Of a DNA stretch of 61,148 nt, positions 7,325 through 46,817 are shown piece after piece (the first letter of the stretch is position 1; every line of letters starts with the position of its first letter). Where the stretch lies: NCBI GenBank assembly GCA_003427395.1, contig BFEA01000040.1, forward strand, positions 2,617,406 through 2,678,553, given 5' to 3'. Under the pieces are notes generated by a model. It was not told where the DNA came from, made no database searches, and worked only from the letters and a program-made list of their open reading frames with translations. The translations under genes were made by a program, and so were the position numbers. The stretch is from Chara braunii. Lineage: Eukaryota > Plantae > Charophyceae.

Positions 7325-7408
7325 TGGGGTGTGTGAGGTTCGAACTCACGACCTTCAGATTCCTTTCTATATATGAGACTGACGCGCTACCGACTGCGCT
7401 AACACCCC
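7325..7408 (-). tRNA. trnM-CAT: tRNA-Met(CAT), elongator type, 11-nt intron
   Basis: GGGGTGTTAGCGCAGTCGGTAGCGCGTCAGTCTCATA[tatagaaagga]ATCTGAAGGTCGTGAGTTCGAACCTCACACACCCCA: perfect acceptor stem, A and B boxes, intron at 37/38. Confidence 0.95.
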
Positions 7409-7946: not shown

Positions 7947-7996
7947 NNNNNNNNNNNNNNNNNNNNNNNNNNNNNNNNNNNNNNNNNNNNNNNNNN

Positions 7997-8083: not shown

Positions 8084-9434
8084 TCGAAAATGATCTCACG
8101 GTGCATCCGCCATGCTACTCCACTCTTTCAGTGGTACACCAGGTCCACCCATAGCCCATCACATGCCGTTTTAACTGCCACCCTTCCATACTACCTTGCC
8201 AGCTCAAAATGACAGGCCACACACAAACAAACTAAACAGGCAAACCACTGCTGCCACTTTACTTCTCTGAAGCTACCTCATACATCTGTGGCTAACCACA
8301 ACCAGTTTTCCAAGTCCCACGTAGGATGGAGGGCACAGGAGAGGCGGGAGGGCAGATGACACACAACGACATCAAGCAGGCAATGAAAAGGCATGACGCA
8401 ATAAGGCATGGGATGACAAGCAACAGCGAAGGACAAAGGCTGGAGGGCACAGGGGAGGTGGAAGGGAAGACAACACACAAGCACACCAAGCAGGCGGGAG
8501 GGAAGACAACATGCAAGCACACGAAACAGGCAAACAGGAAAAAATACAAGTCCCAAAAAAACGAGAAGACCGAAAAAAATAGAAACTGATGATAACAAGA
8601 TTGTTTCGTCGGAGTGGCACCGACTCATCAGGAGGCTGAACCCTCGACAATCTGCAGAATCCCCATATTTGATGGTTTGGCTCATGAACCTTGTTGTGTC
8701 CCCAAGCAGAACATAGCGGCGGGCAGCAACCCTGTGGAGCACCAAACAACACAGTAGAGGCAACACGGCTGCACAACGCCAAAAACGACTGCAAGGAACG
8801 TCATGGCACGCAGGGCATGCAGTGTGGCAACCGTGTAGTGAAGCACATGACAACACAAGCAAGGCAACAGCACCGCAGGGGACGACAGGGCGAGCGGGAC
8901 CAGCAGCTTGGCAACCGTGGAGCGGAGCAGAAGTCACCAGCAACAAGGCGGCCAACCTACAAGGCACACAAGCGGCAAACATGGAAGGCACAACCAGCGG
9001 ATGAGCAGCATGGCAGCGGAGCAGCGAAGCGCAAGGCAACACCAACAACACGGCCACACCACACAGCGAACACATCAACCTGCGAAGAACCACATGCGAA
9101 GCAAGCTGGACAAGCAGCAGGGCAACGACAGAGCGCAGACGAGGACGTCCACACATCCAACACAGAACAAAGTGGCACATGACCTACTCACATCACGAGT
9201 TAACCCTGCAGACTGTTGGTTCCCACCACCCACTGAGCCAGGGAGACACTCCGACGACCATCCGTCATCACCGACAGGCAACACAGACATCCCGCACCGA
9301 GCGGCCCCCCGAAGAGTGCAGTAGGCACTCCAAACGAGCGGCCCCCCGAAGAGTGCTAGAGGGTGCTCGGCTAGAGACACAAAAAGTACTTCAAACAAAT
9401 AGGACAAAGACGAAAAACAAACATACCTAAAACT

Positions 9435-9437
<3 letters not shown>
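8084..9437 (-). mobile_element. Putative non-autonomous hammerhead-carrying retroelement between (CA)n tracts
   Basis: About 1.35 kb strand-skewed segment bounded on both sides by (TG)n/(CA)n, containing a complete hammerhead and no credible ORF. Boundaries are inferred from the microsatellites only. Confidence 0.5.
8598..8653 (-). ncRNA. Type III hammerhead ribozyme (complete)
   Basis: Minus strand AGAUUGUC^GAGG-guucag-CCUC-CUGAUGA-GUCGG-ugccacu-CCGAC-GAA-ACAAUCU: canonical core, GUC cleavage triplet, 4-bp stem I, 5-bp stem II, 7-bp open stem III. Confidence 0.92.
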
Positions 9438-9491
<54 letters not shown>

Positions 9492-10373
9492 NNNNNNNNN
9501 NNNNNNNNNNNNNNNNNNNNNNNNNNNNNNNNNNNNNNNNNNNNNNNNNNNNNNNNNNNNNNNNNNNNNNNNNNNNNNNNNNNNNNNNNNNNNNNNNNNN
9601 NNNNNNNNNNNNNNNNNNNNNNNNNNNNNNNNNNNNNNNNNNNNNNNNNNNNNNNNNNNNNNNNNNNNNNNNNNNNNNNNNNNNNNNNNNNNNNNNNNNN
9701 NNNNNNNNNNNNNNNNNNNNNNNNNNNNNNNNNNNNNNNNNNNNNNNNNNNNNNNNNNNNNNNNNNNNNNNNNNNNNNNNNNNNNNNNNNNNNNNNNNNN
9801 NNNNNNNNNNNNNNNNNNNNNNNNNNNNNNNNNNNNNNNNNNNNNNNNNNNNNNNNNNNNNNNNNNNNNNNNNNNNNNNNNNNNNNNNNNNNNNNNNNNN
9901 NNNNNNNNNNNNNNNNNNNNNNNNNNNNNNNNNNNNNNNNNNNNNNNNNNNNNNNNNNNNNNNNNNNNNNNNNNNNNNNNNNNNNNNNNNNNNNNNNNNN
10001 NNNNNNNNNNNNNNNNNNNNNNNNNNNNNNNNNNNNNNNNNNNNNNNNNNNNNNNNNNNNNNNNNNNNNNNNNNNNNNNNNNNNNNNNNNNNNNNNNNNN
10101 NNNNNNNNNNNNNNNNNNNNNNNNNNNNNNNNNNNNNNNNNNNNNNNNNNNNNNNNNNNNNNNNNNNNNNNNNNNNNNNNNNNNNNNNNNNNNNNNNNNN
10201 NNNNNNNNNNNNNNNNNNNNNNNNNNNNNNNNNNNNNNNNNNNNNNNNNNNNNNNNNNNNNNNNNNNNNNNNNNNNNNNNNNNNNNNNNNNNNNNNNNNN
10301 NNNNNNNNNNNNNNNNNNNNNNNNNNNNNNNNNNNNNNNNNNNNNNNNNNNNNNNNNNNNNNNNNNNNNNNNN

Positions 10374-12403: not shown

Positions 12404-12539
12404 NNNNNNNNNNNNNNNNNNNNNNNNNNNNNNNNNNNNNNNNNNNNNNNNNNNNNNNTTGTTGGTCATTTTTGAACACCACTTGCCTCACTTCTTGATT
12501 GATGCGTGTCATACCTGATTGTGCAGACCCTGAGGCCAT

Positions 12540-12680
12540 GCCAGGTTTCTCCGTATGGTTCCAATTTGGACGGTTGAGATGTCCCGAAGAACCTGACAGC
12601 ACACCCCCACACAACTTGCATCTGATTTCGAGGTCGATTCTGTGGGCTACCTTCTTCACCCAAATAGAATTTTGCCGAGG
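12540..12680 (-). pseudogene. Possible BED zinc-finger remnant of a hAT transposase
   Basis: IWVKKVA..IRCKLCGGVLSGSSGHL resembles the W..CxxC..H BED pattern; no catalytic domain seen. Confidence 0.3.
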
Positions 12681-16591: not shown

Positions 16592-16675
16592 GGGTTGTTA
16601 GCGCAGTCGGTAGCGCGTCAGTCTCATATATAGAAAGAAATCTGAAGGTCGTGAGTTCGAACCTCACACGCCCCA
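16592..16675 (+). tRNA. trnM-CAT: tRNA-Met(CAT) with 11-nt intron, acceptor-stem variant
   Basis: Same body as 7325-7408, intron tatagaaagaa. Acceptor GGGTTGT/ACGCCCC has a T4:C69 mismatch and a T5:G68 wobble. Confidence 0.85.
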
Positions 16676-21367: not shown

Positions 21368-21988
21368 GTGGGGACGGTTACCCCAGGGAAGAAGACAACG
21401 AGGGATAGGAGATTGGCAGCGGCATCAAGTCAGAGATCCAAGATGACACAAGTAGTCATCCCTTTGGTATGCACGGCGGCGCGAGGCGCGCTATGGGTAA
21501 TCACTTGGCAAAAAGGGCCTGGACTGCAATCGATATTCAGACAAGTAGTCTTGTAGTTGTCGACGGTCCCGGAGATTGAAGATTGTCTGCGAACGCTGTA
21601 CTTGGACGCCTTCCCAACAAGACTCATCCCGGATCTGGTGATGCCAAGGATCCTTTTCGGCCCCTCTGGGAACAAGGTGAAGTTGTATGTACCTATCGTG
21701 GACGCCAGGATACCGGAGAACAAGCTGGCGGAACTGGAAAGTCTGGGCTTGAGTCTAACTCCACTAGCTGTCTTCGTAGAGGCAAGGAAACCGGATCTGT
21801 CTCGGCTTATGATCTCCCCGCTCATGGTGCCGGCGGATGCCATCTCGGAGTTGAAGATCCGTCTTCCGAAGGAGAAAAAGTTGGATTCGAACTTCGTGAG
21901 GCTGACTCTCACTCAAAGTTGGTCAACAGAAGGTTCGGCCTCAATCCAAGCGCAACCACATCAGGGGGCAGCTCTGTATAATGGTTAA
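21368..21988 (+). pseudogene. LINE #1 ORF1 C-terminal remnant
   Basis: ORFs 21368-21556 and 21557-21988 are one frame split by a single TAG, and the frame overlaps the ORF2 ATG by 8 nt. Confidence 0.55.
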
Positions 21989-24900
21989 AGTCCGGGTAGC
22001 CACGTGGAACCTGCAAGGGTTCGGGGATACGACAAGAAGATATAAGGAAGCAAGGGTGAAAGCCTGGCTCCATGAGAACAAAATATCTGTCGCCTGCTTT
22101 CAGGAAACAAAATTGGACAGTGGGAAGATTGCAGAGTTGGGACGATGGTGGGACGGCCCGCAGTTGTGGGCGGCAGCAAACGGTACGAAAGGTGGGGTGG
22201 GAATTCTCGTTCACGGAGACCTGGGGGCGGGTATTATTGATTACTACGCGGACCTGTGGGGTAGGTGGGCGTGGGTGGTTCTGCGACAGGGTAACTGTAC
22301 CTGGGCAGTGGCCTCTGTGTATGCCCCAGTTAAGAGAGCGGAGTGGACAGCCTTCTGCGAAGAGTTGAGGATAGTCTTACCGGATGTAGACGATGTGGTA
22401 ATAGGAGGAGATTGGAATACTAGCCTGGACACACGGCTGGATCAAGGACTTAAGGGATGCCCAAAGGATACCCTGGCGTTAGTAGATGTGTTGATAGACT
22501 TGAATCTCAAAGACTCGTTTAGGGACCTTCACCCGGTGGACCCAGGTTAGACCTGGTTCTCACATCGGAGGAGAGGGAGGAGGTTAGATTTTTTACTGAC
22601 CAGGGGAAAGGTGAGAGAAGGGCTAGTGAGCATTCATACAACAAACAATCCAGTCTCAGATCATAAGCCGGTGATAGGAACCTTCAACTTGGGAACTGAC
22701 TTGTCTCGAGGCCGGGGTTATTTTAATTTGAACACGGTGAACTTGAGAAATGATGACCTGACCCAGTGGACAGAAGAGTACTAGGAACGATGGGGAAGGC
22801 AGAAACAGCGGTTCGCTACTCTGGCGGACTGGTGGGACACGGGGATAGGAATGCTCTTTAAACTTATGGATGTGTTTTCGCATATCGTGGCTCTAAATAG
22901 GAACAAGGAGAAGAGGCGGTGCCAGAGGAGGGTGCAGGAAGCAGAAGATAGAATGAAGAACCATCCTATCTCGGAGCTTACGTGGGGGAAGGAAAGAGTG
23001 CCAAGGCTGATGGAATGGGAGGTGAAATAGCAGGAAAGTTCAGACCCATGGGCGGAGAGGGCGGAGAGGGCGAAGATTAAAGGGCTGCAAGTGTATGACA
23101 GGATGTCGAAGGAAGCGTTCCAAAAAATGGTGCCTGCCAGGTCTGGCCTAGTCATGAAGGAACTTAAACATCCGTTCGACCCAGAGGAGCCAGTGGCGAG
23201 CACTCCCACATAAATCTGCAAACACGCGGTGCTGTACTTCCGAGATATCCTTACATCAAGGAACCCCGAACAGGGAGCAGACACCAATCTTGCGGTAAAC
23301 ACAGATCTTTGGGTGAATACGACAGCAAGATTGTGAACGCAGGGACGTCTCGATTTGGACAGGCCGATCACCAAGGAGGAAGCAGGAGAACCATTGAAGG
23401 TGATGGCGAATGGGAAAGACCCTTGGATTCGACGGATCACCGGTGGAGTTTTACCGAAAGCATTGGGAGGTGATGGGTGATGATATAGTGGAAATCTATA
23501 ATGAAGTACAGTTGGGAGGTAACCTGCCGGCCAGCGCGTGCAAAGGTATTATTTCTATCCTGTTCAAGAAAGGAGACACCAACGAAATTAGGAATTGGAG
23601 GCCGATATCGTTGTTGAATGTCTCCTACAAGATTATGGCAAAAACGTTGACCCGCAGGTTGGGGAAGTATCTTCTGCAGTTGGTAGAGGACGATCAAGCG
23701 GCGTTTGTAAAGGGTAGGTCTATTTATGAGAATATTGTTACCGCTATTGAAGTCCTGGAGGTGGTGAACCAAGAAGAGTTGGAGGTAGCTGTCCTACCAC
23801 TTGACATGGAGAAGGTGTACGACAGGGTGAACTGGTCGTATGTATTGACGTCGCTCAGAACGATGGGCTTTGGAGATGTGTTTTGTAACTGGGTGATTGC
23901 GTTGTACTCCCTTTCCACTGCAGCAGTTATGGTAAACAGACACATCTCTGCTTCCTTTCGGCTGTCACGCTCACTTCGTCAAAGATGTCCATTGGCCCCC
24001 CTCTTGTTTGTGGTTCACCTGGAGGTCCCCCTGAATAATATCAGGGCGAATGCACAGATTGTCGGACTGGATCTTGGACGCAGGGCTTGTAAAGTGAAAG
24101 CCTTAGCGGATGACCTGTTTGCAGTTTCTGCAAACACTAAGGAGTCTATGTCGGCATTACGGTACTGCCTTCGACAGTACTAGTAACTGTCGGAAGCAGC
24201 TATCAACTGGTCCAAGTCAGTATACCTCCTGCCGCCGCAGCTTGCCCCAGAGGTGGACTGGGGAATGAAGAAAGTCCGACAGGACGAATCAAAAAGATTT
24301 CTCGGGGTTCAGGTGGCACTCACGTCATGCGCTATGCGACAGGAGGAAATCTTGCAAACAAGAGTGATGCAAAGGATGACAATTTGGGGAAAGGCTCCAC
24401 ATTTGTCGCTCTTCGGCGGAGCCCTTGTAGTGAACGTAGCATTATTTGCACTTCTCACGTACGTAGGGAATGTCAGACCAATCGGCAGAAAGACTCGGGC
24501 GGTAGTTACAAGAAAGGCAGCTAGATTCATCTGGAGACCGTACGCGGAAGAGGGGGAAGGGGTTATGTCGAAAGTGGCCTGGGATCTGATCTGTGCACCC
24601 AGGCATGAAGGAGGCCTAGGTATGGTGGACCCGGGAAGGAGAAACTGTGCTATGCTAGCCAGGTGGGTAGTCCGAGCCATCATAACAGAGAGGCACAAGC
24701 ACTGGGTAGAGTTGGGGGAGAGGATTCTGTGTAGGGAATGGTCACTGCAAAGGGAGTCGGATGTATGGGCATGTGTATGGATCGGCTCGTTCCTTAGAAG
24801 GAGACTAAAGTCTGAGTTTTGGTAAGCGGTGCTGAAGGCGTGGGCAAGGGTCAAACCGGAGATGTTGTGTGAACCACAGACCAAGGCAGAGGTTCTCTCA

Positions 24901-26222
24901 CAAATCATTTTTGAGAACCCACGTATCCTAGATGCTAATGGAAGGATGCTGATGGCCAACCTTGAGTAAGGGAGCTACGGCAGAGCTTGGGTGGAGCATG
25001 GGGTGGTTAGACTGAGAGATATGTGGAATGAGGTGACGGGAAGGTGGAAGACTAGCGAGGAGATGGAGAAAAAATTGAAGCCCTGCAAGTATATGAGACA
25101 GAGGAGGGACCAGATCCTGGATGCAACCCCAGAGGACTGGTTAAACATTTTGTCTCCAGCGAAGCCCGATCCGCCGGGCACATGGTATGAAATGGTGCAA
25201 CAGGAGGCCCACAACGCAGGATCTCGCAACTTCTTGAAGGTGGTAGAGCAGGGGGCCGAAGGTATCAACAGTGGAAACTGGCGGGGACGGAAGGGGGATT
25301 GAGGATAAACGAAGAGGAAGAATCGACTTCAATCCCCAGAGGAACACTAGTTGAAATCAGAGTTAGAGATGCGGTAAGTGAGGAGGGAGTCTGGAGGGCA
25401 AAGTTGTGGAACTCAGGAGAACCAATTGCGAGGTTAAAGGTGGATCCAAACCAATGGGCTTGGAGGAGCAGAGGGCGGCGGGGTGAACATGTCCGTCTGG
25501 ATGAGTACACGTTAAGCTTGGGTTGTGAAGTGCAGGCTCCAACAACCGCCCCACTGACTACAACCTTGGGGAGGTGGAGCAGGGTATATCCAGAGGAGTC
25601 CGAGAAAGTTGGCGAGGCTCTACGAAACTGCTGGGCTCAGTTAACGGACGCTCCGAATCCCAGAGCAGCATCGATTTTTTGGCTAGCCTCCGTGCTTGCC
25701 ACACCTTTGGCGGTATGGCTGATGAGCAGGGGGATGAAGGTGGACAGCCAATATAAGAGGTGCCTTTGGATCTTTGAGTCAACAGTTCATGTATGGTGGG
25801 ACTGCCCAACATCGAGAAGAATCTGGGAGTGGTGGGCCAAACAGTGGGAAGGTTGGACGGAGGGAGCACTCAGGTGGAATAAAGAGTGGGTGTTGCTAGG
25901 AGGGATCCTTGGAAAGCTGCAGTTAAGCAGAGGCTGGGGTTACGTGGCCCAAGCACTCCGGGCCGTGGGCTTTTGGATCATCTGGACGAAAAGATACAGA
26001 ACGATATTTGAAGGAAAGATCATGCCTGACCCAGAGATCTAGGCTACCTTTAAGGTGATGATCCGGAGAGTAATTGCAGCGGATTGGAGAAGGAAAGTGC
26101 CTCGCGGCAGAGGGAGGGTGGCAGGGATCACATGGTTTTAGGATACTTGGGCGCAAGGGGGAAAGCTGGTCACTATTAAGAATGGGGAAAACTTGCTTTT
26201 TTCGGATTGGCTGTTAAGCTAA
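21981..26222 (+). pseudogene. LINE #1 ORF2: APE endonuclease + reverse transcriptase + C-terminal Cys/His motif, disrupted
   Basis: TWNLQG, FQETK, VYAP, GDWN, SDHKPV (APE); WRPISLLNVSYKI, DMEKVYDRV, LRQRCPLAP, LADDL (RT); GGLG; degenerate CCHC (YKRC..ESTVHVWWDC). Many stops and frameshifts near 23410 and 25290. Confidence 0.93.
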
Positions 26223-26558
26223 GGCAGTGAGAAGACTAGGGAACTAATAATGTAAGACGGAAAAATAAGGAAAAATAAAGAAAAATAATATTTTCGTCTT
26301 TCCTCCTTGCTTTTTACCTTAGGGGTCATAACAGGAGGGGGAGGGTAGGGTTCAACCAGGGAACTCAATTTAATTTCCGCAGGTAGGAAGGTTGAGGGAT
26401 AGGGGGTGGAAGAGAGTGTCCAGCTTTCGTAGGAACCACATTAGGTTCCAGCCGCCGTATAGGCGGCCTGAGTGTACCTAGGTAGAAAGGATAGGTCTAT
26501 AGATATAGGGTAACAGCATTCATTCCACATAGTTTAGTAGAGAGGTTAGTATGGATTT

Positions 26559-29500
26559 TCCCTACAACATCACTATTTGTAGATGACCTGACAGTCCTGT
26601 TTCGGGCTAACGCCAGGAGCTTTCAAGCACTAGCAAACACCATCCAACTGTTTGAAATCGCTGCAGACATGAAGGTCAACTGGGGGACGAAAACGGAAGG
26701 TTGGTGGCTGAACCACCCACAGGATGACCCTCCGGCCGTCCCCCCTGTCACATGGCGAAGCAAGGAGGCGGCAATCAGGGTATTGGGAGTGAATTTGACG
26801 GCGCTGGCCCCCCCCCCGGACCATGGGGATGTGCTGGTGGACCTGGAGACTCAACGAATGACCTGCTGGGAGCCAACCTCGCTGGTAGGGAGGGCGCTGG
26901 CAATAAACAATGCAATATTTGCATCGATCTGGTACAAAGTCGCCTTTTGGCGTCTGAATAAAAAGCAATTAACCAGACTAAATCAGGCGGCAGCTGCCTA
27001 CCTATGGAAAAATGATCACTCACACACCCGCTGCCTGAAACGCTTATCATGGGATGTCCTTACTCAACCCAGATCAAAAGGGGGGTTGGGAATCATAGAC
27101 CCGACCTGAGAGATAAACGCTCTACTGTTTAAACTAATTATTAGAGTGCTACTAGCCGATGACATACCATGGGCTCCGTATGCACACATTCAGATAGCGA
27201 ACCTGGCTCCCCCCTCTCCTCAAGACCACCCGGTGCATCCCCTGCAATGGCTGACCAACTCGGCAAGGACCATCCCCGCCTGCCCACGGGTGGACTCGGA
27301 CGCAAGTGCGGGAGGCCAGGCTAGGTGGGACCTGCGCACCGACCCGTTGTGGCCTACAATCATACGCTTATGGAGAGACCATGGTCCGAAGAGAAAACTA
27401 GTCCTGCTGAAATGGCACAAAATTTTACGGCAAGCGCTGTTTGGACACTCCCAACTCCTAGATCAGGAGGGAGCACCGTTTACCCTTCGGCGCAGGTCCA
27501 AATGGTTGAGATGGGTAAAACACGGACTCTTTACAATCCGGGACCTGTGGGATAGCAATGTGGCTGCCTGGCAAACTGAAGACAAAATAAGAGAAAAGTT
27601 GGGGAGGGCTCCCAACTTGGCCCAAGACTTGCAAGAAATCCAGGAGGCCGTCCCTCTGGCCTGGATCAAGGTGCTACGAGATGGTCCCACCATCGTTCAA
27701 AATGACTGGGTAGTGCACCTTCAATCTCTTCATCTCCCCATGACCGTCTTCAAAGTGGAGCAGGTACACCGGGACCACCTGCAGTTGGCCGCCTACAGCC
27801 CACAACTACCGGGGGCGAGATGGTCAAAAATACACAGAGATGAGGACTTGGACTGCCAAACCCCAATGACATCTGTGCTAAGGGTGAGAGTGGTGGAAGA
27901 CAAGGACGATACGTTGTTTTTATACGAACCAACCACCCCCCTCTCCCACCTCCCATTCGATCCAGCACAATGGGAATGGCAATGGGGGAGATCATCTAAA
28001 ATGAGCCCGTGGCAATACACAGTCAAAAACGGATATCGAATGTCAAACGTACAGGTCCCAATTATGGATGACATTCTGCGAAGGTGGGATAGGGACTCCC
28101 CACTGAAAAAAACGGATTTTAATTTTTTTAAATGGACGTCCTACTCCCACATCCGACCAACTAACCACAGAGCCCTACAATGGTAAATTATACACAGATG
28201 CCTGCCCACCCCCGACTGGGTGACTGCGAGGACAGATCTAGAGCAAAAAGGGATACTCTATCCCTTGTGCACTTACTGCGACCGCATTCTCCCGAGGAAA
28301 CTGGCGAACCTGGAGCACTGTCTAATGGAATGCCCTATGGTAACACGCCTCTGGCGCTGGTGGGACACAGCATGGCACTACCTAACAGGGCACCACCTCC
28401 CATGGGACGTGAAAACCATCCTCTTCGGGGCCCTCCAGCCAACCGAAACAGAATGGTCGAGCTTTATGACCAACCTTTTTCGATATTTGCGTCTCACACT
28501 GCTTATGGCAGCTTGACGAATGAGGTGCTCTCATGAAAGAAAACAACAATCCTTTGAATTCCAGCAGGCAAGAGCCATGATTGCTGACACAATCACAGCT
28601 GAGACACAAGCTGCCTGGAAGAGCCTCAGGGCTAGACTTGACCAAGAATCGGAAGGAGCCAAGAAAACGCAGATCATCGAAACCTTCCAGACCACTTGGA
28701 TCGATCGGAATCACAAGCTCTGCACGTTGGATCAACAAAATAACCTCCAATGGCAACCCTGGCTCTCCACGGAGAGACAGTGGGAGTTCTTGCCAACTGA
28801 ACACTTTCTTATTAATTTCCAACCACCAGACTTTGTGCTGTACCCTGTAGACCCGCCTAACATCCCAGCCATCCCCCACTGACAGTGTCCTCCTCTCCCG
28901 CTCACAACCGACCCTCCCCCAGCCCCTCCCCCTCCCCCAGCATTATCCCTTCAGCCGGCCAGGTGAATCACCAATATTTCAAGACTACAGACAAGAGAGC
29001 TGCGGGACAAAAGAGCTGAGAGGAAGCTAGTAGTCTGCTACGAGTGACACAGGGGCAAGGAGTTCAAGACAACAGGGGGGATATAGGGTTTTGGGGTTTA
29101 GGGGATAGGCGACCTGGGCAAATGGCCTGTAGACAGAGAACACAAGACTAGAGAGAAGGGATAATAGGTAGGGTGACAGAGATAAGACATCGGGACCAAA
29201 GAGCGCAATGTGATGTAATGGAATATAATGGAATATAATATAATATAATATAATATAATGTGATGGGGAACGGGATTTTAGGGAGGGTGGGCACAATAGG
29301 GACGGCGGTAGCCGCCCCGCACTACCTCATCACGGAACCATTACTGAACCAATAGACACAAACGACCAGTAAAACAGTTAGACACAGCAGATAAAGAAGG
29401 CATACCTACATAGGGTGCAACATGATCTCAACTGCAGTCTAGGCCTCTGGCCCACACAAGCACTATTGGACAGTTGCAGGGTTTTGCAATGACATCACAT

Positions 29501-29883
29501 GTTCGTGATATGAGGCCGCTGGCATTGATGGCCTGCTCACATATACTATAACAGAAGGGAGGGTTTAGCCACCCGACCTGACCACATAGAACAATACAAC
29601 GTCATCTAAAATGCATCAAACAGGATAGAGATCTCCCAGCACTTAAACATAGACGGACTGTAAGGCTCACAGAGGTAATTAGACATGTCATTAGACATAT
29701 CAACACATCGCAGCAAAGGGCAGTGGGTCTCTATCTCCACAAACTACATTCAATTCATTGAATAGGGACGCTGGACCCGTTTTCCAGCAGGTGCCGCTCC
29801 CCACCAATAGATGGAGCCTCCCCGACGGCGCTAGTGGTGTCTGCTCGTATCAGCACCCCTAGCGGCAGTTCGGGTTGCTTTCT

Positions 29884-29915
<32 letters not shown>
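26559..29915 (+). mobile_element. 5'-truncated L1/Tx1-type LINE #2 nested in the LINE #1 3' UTR, TSD GTATGGATTT
   Basis: One frame 26561-28882 with three stops: FVDDL RT motif, SLVGRALAINN, KGGLGIIDP, CTYC..LEHCLMEC. About 1 kb 3' UTR, structured tail, poly(A) 29885-29915. GTATGGATTT at 26549-26558 and 29919-29928. Confidence 0.9.
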
Positions 29916-29918
<3 letters not shown>

Positions 29919-30122
29919 GTATGGATTTGGTGCAGAGTGTAAGTAGACGTATCGATTGATTGATCTGGGTCATCGGCCTTTGGGCCTCCTGTGTTGTTGG
30001 GGCTGGTGCCCCCACATGTATCGTAGGGGCTGGTTCCCCACCTGTGGCTCTGGGAAATTCCCAGACAGACTGTGTCGATCCGGGTTGTTTGTGAGGAATA
30101 AATGGAATTTCTCGCTTTTTCC

Positions 30123-30154
<32 letters not shown>

Positions 30155-30157
<3 letters not shown>

Positions 30158-30300
30158 CACGGACCAGACCCGCGGTGAGTGCTGGCAGGGGCAGCCAATG
30201 GTTGTCCTGACAGGATAGGCCACCTACCCTACCTATCCCCCCTTTAATACTCCCATCGCAACCCCTGGCCCTACTATCCGACCTCCGTGTGCCCACTTCC
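30155..30300. repeat. Dispersed repeat of about 140 bp (second copy at 42102-42240)
   Basis: ggccacggaccagacccgcggtga.tgctggcag.ggcagccaa.ggttgtcct.acaggataggcc is shared. Confidence 0.8.
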
Positions 30301-30766
30301 GCCGCCCTTGGCAGCACCGTGGGCGCAAAGTTAACCTTCAGGCTGTCGCTGTCGCTGTCGCTGTCGCTGTCACTAGCTTGTAAGCGACCGCCATAGCCAT
30401 CTTTCTTATCTTACTTGCCATTTGTTTGTTTCGTGCGATCCCCATAGCCATCGTCGTGTTTCTTCCTCGTTTCTCGTCGTCGTTAATGCGGCGGACATAG
30501 CCGCCATAGCCGAATCTTCTGTCCATCGTCCTCAACTTCCCTCGCGGACTGTATTATCGTCGGCCGGCCGTGCTGTCGAGATCCCTCTTCACCGGCGGTG
30601 TTGCGGTGAGGAGCGAGGTGTGTTGCTCGTCGGCTGTCGTTTTTGTGTTTGTTTCGCTTTATCCCTCCTCTTATTGCTTCTCGATTTACGCGTTTGGTTG
30701 CCATGGTGGAACCTATGACGCCGTCTTGAAGGCTGCTGAAGGCGCTAGATGACCGGTAGCCGATAG

Positions 30767-30818
<52 letters not shown>

Positions 30819-30889
30819 GAAACCCCATTCTCTCACACACACACACACATACACACACGCACACACGCACACACGCACTCCCACGCACC

Positions 30890-30950
<61 letters not shown>

Positions 30951-30954
30951 NNNN

Positions 30955-31030
<76 letters not shown>

Positions 31031-31383
31031 TATGTTCTTAAGTTCCTATTTATAATGTATTGTTTTCGTTTAAGAAATGTGCATGAACGTCATCTTTTGT
31101 TCCTCCTCGTCTTCATCTCTTGGATACAAGCTAACGATGTGACCTCAGTTTCCGCCATCTATGGTGGAGGTGTTTCTTACCCTCCCTCTCATGTGCCACG
31201 TGTCTCTCTCACCCTCCCATTTTGCCACGTGCACAGACTGTATTCTCGACGTGTACTCAATCAAAACAGGCCAGGCTGTTCGAGTTTTACTTCGAGCCTG
31301 ATTTGAGTCCATGTTGTGTGCACACTATATGTCCATTTGAGTCTGAGTGAGTACTTTGACTGATCTTTGCTGTGTTTGTTTTA

Positions 31384-31428
31384 TGCGGGGGTAGCCCGCA
31401 CCGCCCCGCACCGCGGGCGCTAAGCTAG
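31384..31428 (+). mobile_element. Helitron-like 3' terminus
   Basis: GC hairpins tgcggg-ggtag-cccgca and cccgc-acc-gcggg, then 7 nt and CTAG followed by T. No clear 5' A|TC end identified. Confidence 0.5.
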
Positions 31429-31588
31429 TATATATATATATATCTTCTCCCTCTCTGCCTACGGTTTACCGGGCAGTTCTATTTGACGATATATATATCG
31501 TCAATATATATATCGTCACAAACAGAACTGCCCGGTAAACCTTAGGCAGAGAGAGAGAAGAGGACAACAAACGAGGGGCTGTGACAAA

Positions 31589-31633
31589 CTGTTTCGTCGG
31601 AGTTTCACGGACTCATCAGGAGGCTGAACCCTC
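31589..31633 (-). ncRNA. Hammerhead 3' cleavage-product sequence (starts at the cleavage site)
   Basis: GAGG-guucag-CCUC-CUGAUGA-GUCCG-ugaaacu-CCGAC-GAAACAG. Stem I and loop 1 are identical to 8598-8653; the upstream NUH/stem III strand is absent and replaced by (AT)n. Confidence 0.8.
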
Positions 31634-31640
31634 ATATATA

Positions 31641-31670
31641 TGATGAGTCGGTGAAACTCCGACGAAACAG
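31641..31670 (+). ncRNA. 5'-truncated hammerhead half (core, stem II, GAAAC)
   Basis: UGAUGA-GUCGG-ugaaacu-CCGAC-GAAACAG; lacks stem I and the first core C. Confidence 0.7.
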
Positions 31671-32360
31671 TTTGTCACAGCCCCTCGTTTGTTGTCCTCT
31701 TCTCTCTCTCTGCCTACGGTTTTCTTATCTAATTCAAAAGTATATTGTCTTTTTTCTAATAGAGAAATACTTTTTTCTGCTCGACGTGCCCAGGCAAATG
31801 GTTTGGTTAATATATGCTATATCTGTTTGTGACGATATATATATCGTCACATAGATATCAGAGCGCAAAAACGAAAAAAACAAACAAAGGAAACAAAAAA
31901 ATATCAATTCATTTTTCATCTTCTTCCTTACAACTCCCCCTGTTCAGAACCTCTTTTGCGTACAAGGCCGCTCACCGCGGCCCACGTGGATGTAGGTTGA
32001 GCGGCGGCTGCCCCCACCCCCGTGTGTCATATCGACCCACTTGCACACAGCCAAAAGGCAAAGAGGCAAAGAAAAGAGGAAGGAAACAGCCCAAACAAAA
32101 CAGAACAGGGGGCTGCAAAGCAAATCCTAAATGACAATCCTAGATGACAAGTCCATATATATATATGACGATATATATATATTGACTAGATGTATCGTCA
32201 CAAAAATGTCAGAGCGCAAAAGCGAAAACTCACCCTGTTCAAACCCTCTTGCGTACAAGGCCGCCCACGTGGATGTATTATAGTAATATTACATTGATTT
32301 GTTGATCTGACTGATGCAGTAGTAATATTTTGTTCTTCTGTCTGTGTACGTGGTACTTAT

Positions 32361-33701
32361 ATGAAGAGGAACGAAATGAAGGGCCCGAAGGTCGTCTGCG
32401 ATCCGCGGCACGGTCCCGGTCCCAATGGTGATGACGATGGCAGACGGCAGTCGACCGTCCCGATCGCGACGGAGGGATTGCCGTCTGTTGCTCTCCCTGT
32501 GCTGTCTGGTGAAGAGGTAATCAACGAGATACGCCGACGTGGCAGGCATTCCAATTGGTCCAAATTTCGCGCCATGTACTCGAGCGTGATTGGCGGCGTG
32601 ACGACGGATCCCTCTGCTATGCTGATTTCTCTCGACGACCACATGGTTCATCGAGGGCACGCAGTTTTCGACACAGCGATGGTGGTCGGCGGCTACGCCC
32701 ACGGGCTGGAAGCGCATCTGGACCGTCTGTTCAGATCGATGGCGATGGCGAGGCTCTCTCCTCCTTTCCCGCGCGAAATTCTTCGCGACGTCATCCTTAA
32801 AACCGCCGGGATCTCTCAGTGTCGCGACGGTCAGATCAGGTATTGGGTATCGGCCGGCCCAGGTGGATTCGGGCTGTTGCCATCGGAATGCCCGAGGTCG
32901 GCATTTTACGTTGTCGTCTTCGACCAGCCTCTCTTTTCGGTTGACGTCAGCGGCGGCAGCGGCGGGAGGATGTCGGCGGCAGCTGGGAAGCAGCAGCAGC
33001 TGATCGCGCGAAGAGCGAAGGCAATCACGACGAGTGTACCCATCAAACCCCCTCCTTTCTGCTTGATGAAGACCAATAATTACATTCAGAACGTGATGGC
33101 CGGGATGGAGGCGGCGGCGCAGGGCGCTGACGTGGCAGTCTGGACAGATCAGGAGGGGTACCTGGCGGAGGGTCCGACCGTTTCGATTCTGATCGTGAGT
33201 GCGGATGGGTACTTAACGTCTCCGACCTCAGACACAGCTCTCAGGGGATGCACGGCTGAGCGGGTGATGGAACTGACACGTCATCGACTGGTAATGCAGG
33301 GACACGTGGCATCGTCAGCCTCCTCCGTGATTGGTGGACACGTGGCAGCAGCAGCAGCTGCAGCGGGGGGAGCAGATAGATTAGCACTCTTGTCGAATCC
33401 ACTTCCCCTGAAGGGGGTAAGAGTGCAGAGGATCCCCGTGGAGGAGGCAAGGCGCGCCAAGGAGATGTTCATAGTCGGTAGCACGAGCCTAGTGCTACCA
33501 ATCGTAGAGTGGGATGGACAACCGGTCGGCGACGGCAGGCCGGGACCGGTCGCGGCAGCACTGTACGAAATGCTGGAGGATGACATGCGCCACGGCGAAA
33601 CCAATGGCAAAAGGACACGTGTCGCCATTCCCTACCCGCCGCCATCAACTGCCACGTGTCCGACACGTGAAGGTTCCACGTCGACGACGTCACGACTCTG
33701 A
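32361..33701 (+). CDS. DAAT: Class IV PLP-dependent aminotransferase, D-amino-acid transaminase / 4-amino-4-deoxychorismate lyase-like (446 aa, single exon)
   Basis: AMYSS..GVTTDP.AM....DDHMVHRGH.VFDT, HLDRL.RS, RYW.SAGPG, PLP lysine in MKTNNY, AEGP, LRGCT, WDG..VGDG.PGP are collinear with plant DAAT/ADCL. The start codon is uncertain. Confidence 0.92.
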   Translation: MKRNEMKGPKVVCDPRHGPGPNGDDDGRRQSTVPIATEGLPSVALPVLSGEEVINEIRRRGRHSNWSKFRAMYSSVIGGVTTDPSAMLISLDDHMVHRGHAVFDTAMVVGGYAHGLEAHLDRLFRSMAMARLSPPFPREILRDVILKTAGISQCRDGQIRYWVSAGPGGFGLLPSECPRSAFYVVVFDQPLFSVDVSGGSGGRMSAAAGKQQQLIARRAKAITTSVPIKPPPFCLMKTNNYIQNVMAGMEAAAQGADVAVWTDQEGYLAEGPTVSILIVSADGYLTSPTSDTALRGCTAERVMELTRHRLVMQGHVASSASSVIGGHVAAAAAAAGGADRLALLSNPLPLKGVRVQRIPVEEARRAKEMFIVGSTSLVLPIVEWDGQPVGDGRPGPVAAALYEMLEDDMRHGETNGKRTRVAIPYPPPSTATCPTREGSTSTTSRL

Positions 33702-34365: not shown

Positions 34366-34604
34366 ATACCGTTCTCGGCCTTTGGGTCGGATCAAGTGTA
34401 AGTATCTGTTCTGATCAGATATTAAACTGAAGGGATCAGTTTAATATCTGATCCGTGGTCCATCGGACCCGACGATATTAAATGAATTGTTCTGGGCAAC
34501 GGAGGGGTCGTACGGGTAAGCTTGCTTGCTTGATCCCTTCAGCGGTTGCTTGCTTGATCCCTTCAGCGTTGCCTCTGTATTGCACTGCAGCAGAGTGCGG
34601 CGCG

Positions 34605-34637
<33 letters not shown>
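34366..34637 (+). pseudogene. U2: Polyadenylated, rearranged U2 snRNA retrocopy
   Basis: ATACC.TTCTCGGCCTTT.G...GATCAAGTGTA(A)GTATCTGTTCT..ATCAGTTTAATATCTGAT, stem IIb, stems III/IV with ATTGCAC loop, then A29. Extra A in the branch-pairing GTAGTA, degenerate Sm site, internal insertion and duplication. Confidence 0.9.
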
Positions 34638-35569
34638 CAGAGAGAGAACCGATGCAGCTGTGAGAGGATCAGTGTAGGTTCAGTCAATGAACTGCTGTAT
34701 GATTGTTTTTGGAGATTGGTTGGTCCGAAGGGTTAAAAAAAAGGGGAAAAAAAAAAAAAAAAAGAACGGACGGCTGTACTTGGAAAATACTTCGACAAAA
34801 GCGATATTTCTGCATTTTCTAAAACAAAAAAAAAAAAAAAAAAGAGAACCGATGATACTATGGCTAAAAATAGAACGGAGGGCTGTACTTGAAAAATCGT
34901 ACTGTACTATGCCTAAGAATACTGCTATGCTTCCTGATGCACCTTTTTTTTTTTTTTTTTTTTTTTGGGTGGCAAGTGGTTGTGGGTGCGGCTTCTCGGC
35001 GCCTGTTTGTTGGCCTGGACACTTCCAACGCAGCTCCTGTTTCATTTTTAATTCTTTTTTTTCCTTTCATTTTTTTTTTTTTTTTTTTTTTTTCCCCTAG
35101 TAAGTTTCCGTCGGAGCAACGAAATTGAGCGTACGAAAAAAAACAGAATTTTTTTGCGTTTTTTTGTCCCCATGACTTCGGACGATCTGATGGTCGGGCG
35201 TGGCGACGAAGGCCCCATGACTGCACCCACGGATGTATTTTGACGGTACTTTGCGTACAGATACATCAAATGGCAAAGTGAGATAACCACATTCTCACCC
35301 CATGAGAAATGAAATTTTGACTAAGTCCACTTTCATGGATTTAGAAAAAAAATGTCAGGTTTAACGAAATGTCAGTTAAGGGTCCTTTGGGACATCCGTT
35401 AAAATCGGAACCATAGAGAGAACGAACCTTTTTTTTTTTTTTTTTTTTTTTGTAGAGAACGAACATTAGCAGAGCCCTTGCGCAAGGATGCCACACATAT
35501 ATTGAGAAATAGTCGCCAAAAAAAAAAAAAAAAAAGAACAGAACAGAAAGGTAATGCAGTGATGTAATC

Positions 35570-46733: not shown

Positions 46734-46817
46734 GGGGTGTTAGCGCAGTCGGTAGCGCGTCAGTCTCATACATTGAAAGGAATCTGAAGGTCGTGAGTTC
46801 GAACCTCACACACCCCA
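46734..46817 (+). tRNA. trnM-CAT: tRNA-Met(CAT), elongator type, 11-nt intron
   Basis: Exons identical to 7325-7408; intron cattgaaagga. Confidence 0.95.

Follow-up and report, generated by a model that had tools for sequence, protein, structure and literature searches.

A short (AT)n tract in the genome of Chara braunii (assembly GCA_003427395.1, contig BFEA01000040.1) is crowded with small inserts, one of which begins where a hammerhead ribozyme is predicted to cut. How did these sequences come to be stacked in a single microsatellite, which enzymes put them there, and was their 5' end made by self-cleavage? A first-pass annotation, made from the sequence alone, had proposed a single family whose RNA 5' end is set by the ribozyme. 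We followed up this proposal in the 61,148-nt stretch of DNA analysed here (the window), in about 197 kb of other C. braunii DNA fetched via neighbouring protein genes (loci designated L001 and so on; ~260 kb including the window), and, for positions 31350-32350, in C. braunii DNA contigs (two sets, X1 and X3) and RNA-seq reads (two oligo-dT runs).

Seven inserts from two families interrupt one (AT)n tract

Reading positions 31200-32500 directly, we found that 31429-32277 is an (AT)n tract interrupted by seven inserts in both orientations (Table 1), in line with the earlier count of about seven. The spacers between them are (AT)4 to (AT)7. Read on its own strand, each unit has a 3' end fixed at (T)GACG adjoining AT repeats, and the 5' ends differ. 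A search of the 61-kb window for GTGACGATATAT with at most one mismatch returned seven occurrences, all in the cluster, against 0.06 expected; all (AT)5-or-longer tracts of the window fall inside the cluster as well. The fixed (T)GACG next to AT of the earlier description is confirmed. Insert U6 is GACG, and insert U7 is followed by ATACAT... rather than by clean (AT)n, its 5' end meeting unique AT-rich flank.

The inserts had been taken for one family. Self-BLAST and alignment separated them into two, family A (U1, U3, and U4) and family B (U5 and U7). In family A, which terminates in CTGTTTGTGACG, a type III hammerhead is located about 120 nt from the 3' end; family B is without a ribozyme and terminates in TATGTGACG or TTTGTGACG. 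A terminal TGTGACG is common to both, and they are otherwise unrelated. Insert U4 proved to be composite: by self-BLAST, alignment, and depth, only 31642-31723 and its last 12 nt are family A. The piece between them (31724-31819) has a contig depth of 65-2300 versus about 10^6 for family A, and it gave no match to family A and none in the sampled Chara loci, in a BLAST that was noisy. The tail of U1 is 2 nt shorter, a variant that recurs in the reads as a 2-nt deletion at 31517.

Table 1. Inserts of the cluster and other mapped features (window positions unless a locus is named)
Feature	Position	Strand	Description
(TA)7 / (AT)7 tract	31429-31443		left cluster edge, abuts U1 5' end
Insert U1	31444-31488	+	last 45 nt of family A, end TTTGACG; then (AT)5
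Insert U2	31499-31503	-	5-nt mini-insert CGTCA (TGACG on element strand), (AT)5 each side
Insert U3	31514-31633	-	120-nt family A copy, start G1.1 (GAGGG...), end GTGACG
(AT)4 spacer	31634-31641		separates head-to-head 5' ends of U3 and U4
Insert U4	31642-31834	+	193 nt, composite; then (AT)5
U4a	31642-31723	+	family A copy truncated within CUGAUGA box, 97.5% identical to U3
Foreign piece in U4	31724-31819		unrelated low-copy sequence, not family A
U4 terminal 12 nt	31823-31834	+	family A end CTGTTTGTGACG, then (AT)5
Insert U5	31845-32154	-	310-nt family B copy without hammerhead, end TATGTGACG adjoining (AT)5; (AT)6 beyond
Insert U6	32167-32170	+	4-nt mini-insert GACG, (AT)6 either side, plus 13 nt before U7
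Insert U7	32196-32277	-	82-nt 5'-truncated family B copy, internal deletion relative to U5
Complete type III hammerhead	8598-8653	-	cleavage-site reference, GUC|GAGGG; Hammerhead_3 45.1 bits, E 1e-6
Complete family A hammerhead	L008:3943-3998	-	Hammerhead_3 45.8 bits, E 5e-7
Family C	8084-9437	-	1.35-kb non-coding element carrying the 8598-8653 hammerhead, bracketed by (CA)n
U2 gene	34366-34610
U6-like matches	35382-35523, 12477-12595
tRNA-Met (CAU) genes	7325-7408, 16592-16675, 46734-46817	-, +, +	near-identical, 13-nt intron each

Such an arrangement might in principle owe more to DNA-level events or to assembly than to insertion, through palindromic or slippage duplication affecting one or two of the inserts or through high-copy repeats mis-joined across short AT tracts. 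Several features are of the kind that these would leave: an exact 15-nt tandem duplication at 31489-31518, which includes insert U2, and near-perfect inverted repeats at 31443-31561 and between 31537-31633 and 31641-31722. No contig of the two DNA sets spans the cluster, and the unit order is as assembled. Runs of N lie directly beside microsatellites or repeat ends elsewhere in this assembly (window 7966-7995 and 9492-9520; L001 7263-7400 and 18500-18748), hence caution is due with its repeat-rich microsatellite junctions. Yet simple duplication would not yield different truncation points, private substitutions, and two families, and AT-flanked stacking recurs at L008 and on other contigs, for example as tail-to-tail joins that lack the 5-nt insert. 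We consider an artefact of either kind very unlikely as the main source of the pattern.

We also noted that U3 and U4a form an 82-nt inverted repeat (31537-31722; 97.5% identical, 8-nt AT spacer), which scores as several miRNA-precursor families, all below threshold. If transcribed, this hairpin could be a source of small RNAs.

Both families also abut (TA)n elsewhere in the genome

Three further copies of family A lie at two other Chara loci, all AT-flanked and with differing 5' ends. One is a 327-nt copy (L004:17855-18181) whose cleavage site is mutated and which adjoins (AT)6 on the 5' side and degenerate AT on the 3' side. The other two, a 59-nt 5'-truncated copy and a longer one, stand at L008 in direct order with (AT)19 between them and AT on their flanks. 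The L004 copy and the longer L008 copy have the same 5' boundary, GGGG(G)TGTGAA, from which we take full-length family A to be probably a unit of about 330 nt, a 5' end based on two copies. The six sizeable family A copies thus measure 45, 59, 120, 193, about 245, and 327 nt. In L001 and L008, all family B copies terminate in TGTGAC(G/A), which is followed by (AT)n. Across the 260 kb, 10-11 of the 27 (AT)4-or-longer tracts abut GAC(G/A)/CGTC (background 1.8% per side), and at least 16 of the 27 touch a family A or family B end.

The reads tell of very high copy numbers. Family A reaches a summed depth of 0.9-1.2 million in the X1 DNA contigs versus about 13 in the unique flanks, which corresponds to roughly 10^4-10^5 genome copies and is consistent with six copies in 260 kb; family B bins have summed depths of 10^4 to 3.5x10^5. 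On the 3' side, hundreds of reads and contigs show loose ends that run from flank through (AT)n into CGT..., or from GACG through (AT)n into unrelated flank. The (AT)n association first seen in the cluster was found again at two independent Chara loci and in hundreds of flanks from reads and contigs. The family appears to occupy much of the genome's (TA)n microsatellite and perhaps also seeds it. RNA reads are strand-biased by 2-4:1, and the bias flips with element orientation, so that transcription of the family runs mainly in one direction, which, by the usual library convention, yields the ribozyme-sense strand. Meanwhile, a 39-nt family A pattern had no match in a metagenome scan, and a scan with a hammerhead-core pattern returned one contig, of family C (see below), and none of family A.

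Other mobile elements also use these tracts. At L001 (18859-19625), a 767-bp element with ends CAGGG.../...CACTG and GC-rich subterminal repeats sits between (AT)16 and (TA)10, and it looks like a TA-inserting, MITE-like DNA transposon. Separately, about 90 nt upstream of the family A stack at L008 is a U6 snRNA-like sequence that ends in a T run (L008 4490-4589 (-); 30.8 bits, below threshold).

Family A carries a predicted type III hammerhead

A search of the window with Rfam at gathering thresholds reported no hammerhead; matches appear in E-value mode. Both complete hammerheads, the one at 8598-8653 and that of the longer family A copy at L008, score just below the gathering score of Hammerhead_3 (RF00008), which is 48.5, and U3 gives a partial match of 22 bits. 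The exact core CUGAUGA ... GAAA is present at 8603-8631(-), 31591-31619(-), and L008:3949-3976(-), and the cleavage triplets all conform to NUH (GUC at window 8646, GUU at L008, and GUA at L011). In the MFE fold, both complete hammerheads form the canonical three-way junction in type III topology, with helix I GAGG/CCUC, helix II GUCGG/CCGAC, and helix III open. The type III topology named in the first-pass annotation is supported by folding and by these covariance-model matches just below the gathering score. Longer copies with an upstream hammerhead strand, which it had proposed to look for, exist, the complete family A hammerhead at L008 being one. By these sequence features, family A carries a canonical type III hammerhead that is predicted to self-cleave. 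U3 itself has neither the helix III 5' strand nor the cleavage triplet and so cannot self-cleave. RNA reads cross the cleavage site, so uncleaved RNA exists.

The hammerhead at 8598-8653 belongs to a third family, C, which resembles family A only over about 63 nt around the ribozyme. Within helix III, families A and C differ by one compensatory change (C-G to U-A) and by one G-U to G-C change. At L011 (BFBZ01011546.1, 1-1534), two family C copies lie head-to-tail with (CA)n between them and with a defined 5' end, AATCAGTTTTA. This tandem and the (CA)n bracketing in the window support a second, (CA)n-specific family, and the (CA)n association fits the target bias reported for Chlamys elements (PMC8557442). 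We noted, in addition, that long family A copies share a 5' start, GGGGTGTGAA..CAGTCTG (L004 17855-17870; L008 4100-4114 (-)), which resembles an internal motif of family C (window about 9220-9250 (-)).

Self-cleavage does not explain most family A 5' ends

The RNA strand of U3 starts GAGGGTTCAG, the nucleotide right after the cleavage triplet as defined by three references (the 8598-8653(-) hammerhead, the L008:3943-3998 hammerhead, and the read consensus). That U3 begins exactly at the cleavage site therefore holds to within 1 nt: the commonest variant of the family is GUU|GAGGG, and the T of the preceding AT run could be U17.

One reading of this coincidence is a separate retrozyme-like system, where the transposition template owes its 5' end to hammerhead self-cleavage and the 120-nt GAGGG unit is the characteristic product. 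The chance that one of 3-6 copies would start within 1 nt of the site is about 1-4%, and a cut by a downstream hammerhead would leave an RNA of exactly 120 nt with the 3' recognition end intact. Contigs in which 31633 is covered away from the contig ends, and which run into AT, have summed depths of 2872 (X1) and 12546 (X3), which suggests a few hundred copies similar to U3. Depth at 31609, however, is 9.4x10^5 (X1) and 1.6x10^6 (X3), and U3-like copies account for only about 0.3-0.8% of the depth at this point, 24 nt inward; this leaves room for a few hundred copies that start at the cleavage site and for no dominant class. The dominant loose ends at 31633/31634, in DNA and RNA alike, run on as (G/T/A)ACAGTCTGCAGAATCCCC..., that is, into the helix III 5' strand and upstream sequence, so most copies and many transcripts cross the cleavage site.

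Further observations point the same way. Family A copies at L004 and L008 reach 125-210 nt or more upstream of the ribozyme, and reads show other 5' truncations joined to AT at 31580, 31597, 31605, 31624, and 31629. Only U3, with its 1-nt ambiguity, starts at the cleavage site among the six sizeable copies sampled; the other five (45, 59, 193, about 245, and 327 nt) begin elsewhere. RNA-seq on 31350-32350 had no reported pile-up of read starts or ends. A copy that starts at G1.1 has, moreover, lost its own cleavage site and cannot pass the trait on. We therefore judge a system built on self-cleaved templates to be quite unlikely, and the earlier claim that the RNA 5' end is made by self-cleavage is not supported as a rule for family A.

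A minority class of copies that start at the cleavage site, at about 0.3-0.8% of depth, is possible, and U3 may derive from a self-cleaved RNA that served as an occasional template. More tentatively, and with considerable doubt on our part, a 120-nt self-cleaved RNA running from G1.1 to ...GUGACG could have been reverse-transcribed into (TA)n often enough to give a distinct class of a few hundred ribozyme-delimited inserts, which would make a green-lineage, non-LTR, microsatellite-homing retrozyme-like family. If true, such a family would connect the hammerheads of Penelope-like elements to the type III ribozymes found in plant retrozymes.

Probable target-primed reverse transcription into (TA)n, and its likely enzymes

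Target-primed reverse transcription into a palindromic microsatellite would be expected to leave just such traces: a fixed 3' end, 5' truncations graded down to 4-5 nt, AT flanking the insert on either side, and inserts in both orientations. With three AT-flanked family A copies elsewhere and 10-11 of 27 tracts at GAC(G/A), this mode of insertion is well supported for families A and B, and we infer its individual steps as follows. An element RNA ending ...GUGACG, with an AU-rich read-through or tail, would anneal to nicked (TA)n; target-primed reverse transcription would then copy the RNA, often halting early, to give variable 5' ends and the 4-5-nt abortive inserts; and (TA)n would be regenerated on either side of the insert, so that the site remains a target. 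Since (TA)n is palindromic and regenerated on both sides, it would serve as a target in either orientation, with head-to-head and tail-to-tail pile-up as the outcome. In part, the (AT)n could have come with the element as a tail instead of having been there beforehand as the target. The non-LTR character, fixed 3' end, and variable 5' truncation proposed in the first-pass annotation are upheld, with no LTRs and no TG..CA ends seen. We considered and rejected a DNA transposon or Helitron: terminal inverted repeats are absent, the termini do not read TC...CTRR, the family is transcribed, and a ribozyme is present.

That two unrelated families have only a terminal heptamer in common suggests one shared enzyme by which the RNA 3' end is recognised. 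We regard it as reasonably probable that the cluster consists of stacked, separate, mostly 5'-truncated insertions of families A and B into (TA)n, made by enzymes most likely from a Chlamys-type Penelope-like element (PLE). Such an element has an N-terminal GIY-YIG domain, and family A would be its non-autonomous or pLTR-tail derivative. In the window and nine other Chara loci, motif scans and Pfam searches of long ORFs turned up neither a GIY-YIG motif or ORF nor a PLE-like RT; the only RTs there are of LINE and Ty3-type LTR elements. The autonomous partner with the same 3' end for which a search had been proposed (GIY-YIG plus RT, or a LINE) did not turn up either, no autonomous element in the window or in the 197 kb of other Chara loci ending in TGTGACG. 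As no PLE lies within the 260 kb examined, the identity of the partner is something we infer from elsewhere.

Microsatellite-specific non-LTR retrotransposons and their SINE-like parasites insert into simple repeats by target-primed reverse transcription, leaving a fixed 3' end and 5' truncation, and their repeat-containing RNA 3' ends anneal to the target. These LINEs have a restriction-like or apurinic-type endonuclease and are not known to carry a hammerhead, whereas family A has one. Could a (TA)n-specific LINE or another non-PLE RT then be the source of the enzymes, with families A and B as SINE-like parasites that have its 3' TGTGACG, and with the hammerhead as a passenger? Families A and B, unrelated save for their terminal heptamer, do recall SINE/LINE pairs. 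LINEs are abundant in the C. braunii genome, no PLE was found nearby (260 kb), and the hammerhead core is also a module in unrelated contexts (family C, and A-rich continuations at 31588/31590). The window indeed holds a LINE with APE and RT domains, but this element ends in a stem-loop and poly(A) rather than in TGTGACG-(AT)n. Inverted and tandem stacks are typical of PLEs, a hammerhead is a hallmark of PLE termini, and C. braunii PLEs with 3' hammerheads have been published (PMC8557442). On balance we hold a LINE or other non-PLE source to be unlikely and retain a Chlamys-type PLE as the preferred source.

Closest known relatives

C. braunii contains Chlamys-type PLEs in very many copies (Craig et al. 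2021, PMC8557442). The same study reports canonical 3' hammerheads in the Chlamys-2 (Chlamys-2_cBra) and PLE-X families of this species, one of whose PLE types joins a gag-like ORF with a canonical 3' hammerhead. Among the general features of PLEs it names frequent 5' truncation, partial tandem or inverted insertions, and a microsatellite bias, with Chlamys elements reported to target (CA)n and (C)n, and Naiad and Hydra elements (TA)n. Like the Chlamys PLEs of C. braunii, family A combines a 3'-proximal hammerhead, high copy number, 5' truncation, tandem and inverted insertions, and microsatellite bias. In this comparison, which is by description, the copies here differ in that they have no ORF and in that they target (TA)n rather than (CA)n or (C)n. 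The hammerheads of PLEs have so far been mostly type I, whereas that of family A is type III. Hydra and Naiad, two further PLE clades, resemble families A and B in their (TA)n insertion (PMC8557442), and Hydra elements universally have hammerheads. This likeness, too, is by description: both are animal elements, the Hydra endonuclease is C-terminal, and Naiads have no canonical hammerheads.

We next compared family A with retrozymes. Metazoan non-LTR retrozymes (Cervera and de la Pena 2020, PMC7229834; Li et al. 2026, preprint 10.64898/2026.07.22.740005) are likewise short, non-coding, hammerhead-bearing, and non-autonomous, with a proposed origin from PLE pLTRs and reliance on PLE enzymes. 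They form head-to-tail arrays of 170-400-nt monomers with type I hammerheads and give circular RNAs; family A, in contrast, is dispersed, AT-flanked, and 5'-truncated, has a single type III hammerhead, and resides in a green alga. We rejected this assignment, since no two complete hammerheads stand in tandem in the cluster (in the L008 pair, the downstream copy alone has one) and the type is III. Plant LTR retrozymes (Cervera et al. 2016, PMC4918200) are closer in belonging to the green lineage and in being non-coding and transcribed with a type III hammerhead. Such retrozymes are built with a pair of LTRs, each bearing a hammerhead, together with a tRNA-Met primer-binding site and a polypurine tract, and they are flanked by 4-bp target duplications; all of these features are absent here. 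This assignment was rejected as well: each copy has a single hammerhead, direct terminal repeats are absent, and the termini do not read TG..CA. As for a tRNA-Met primer-binding site in family A, the longest match was 8-9 nt, between the 5' end of the long copies, GGGGTGTG, and the complement of the 3' end of the tRNA-Met genes in the window. This is a weak primer-binding-site lead, which may be chance (about 1-4%).

The features that family A has in common with non-autonomous or pLTR-tail derivatives of PLEs are a hammerhead in the terminal region, 5' truncation, complex tandem or inverted insertions, and microsatellite bias. Closest to it among known elements are the Chlamys PLEs of C. braunii that bear hammerheads and the PLEs of the Naiad and Hydra clades, which target (TA)n (PMC8557442). 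By literature and resemblance, a Penelope-derived origin of families A and B is likely, and the Penelope pLTR-type origin that the first-pass annotation had offered as one option fits best with the published 3' hammerheads of Chlamys and the (TA)n insertion of Naiad and Hydra (PMC8557442). To call the cluster an undescribed system was, however, an overstatement, as a terminal-region hammerhead, microsatellite homing, 5' truncation, and inverted or tandem stacks have all been described for PLEs and their non-autonomous derivatives. The families look like what is probably the non-coding tail of PLEs already described in C. braunii.

If the Penelope link is true, C. braunii has tens of thousands of transcribed copies of a short hammerhead parasite of Chlamys-type elements, and (TA)n homing would extend to the green-lineage branch of PLEs. 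A type III hammerhead would then also occur in a non-LTR setting in a streptophyte alga. This would bear on the proposal that PLEs gave rise to plant retrozymes and viroid-like RNAs (PMC5680766).

Genomic setting of the cluster

The cluster lies 84 nt upstream of the ATG at 32361 of an ORF (32361-33701) that encodes a class IV aminotransferase and that, in a homology search, was 100% identical to part of CBR_g38626. This public gene model (766 aa; window 21641-33701 (+)) is a chimera of LINE exons, from about 21.6-26.7 kb, and the aminotransferase ORF. Because its last exon starts at 32319, the cluster falls within the predicted last intron; more probably, this stretch is instead the upstream region of the aminotransferase gene. 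Users of the annotation should be warned that the model joins LINE exons to an aminotransferase gene across the cluster. Among the small-RNA genes of the window (Table 1), those for tRNA-Met all contain an intron, and an intron-containing elongator tRNA-Met is a trait of the plant lineage.
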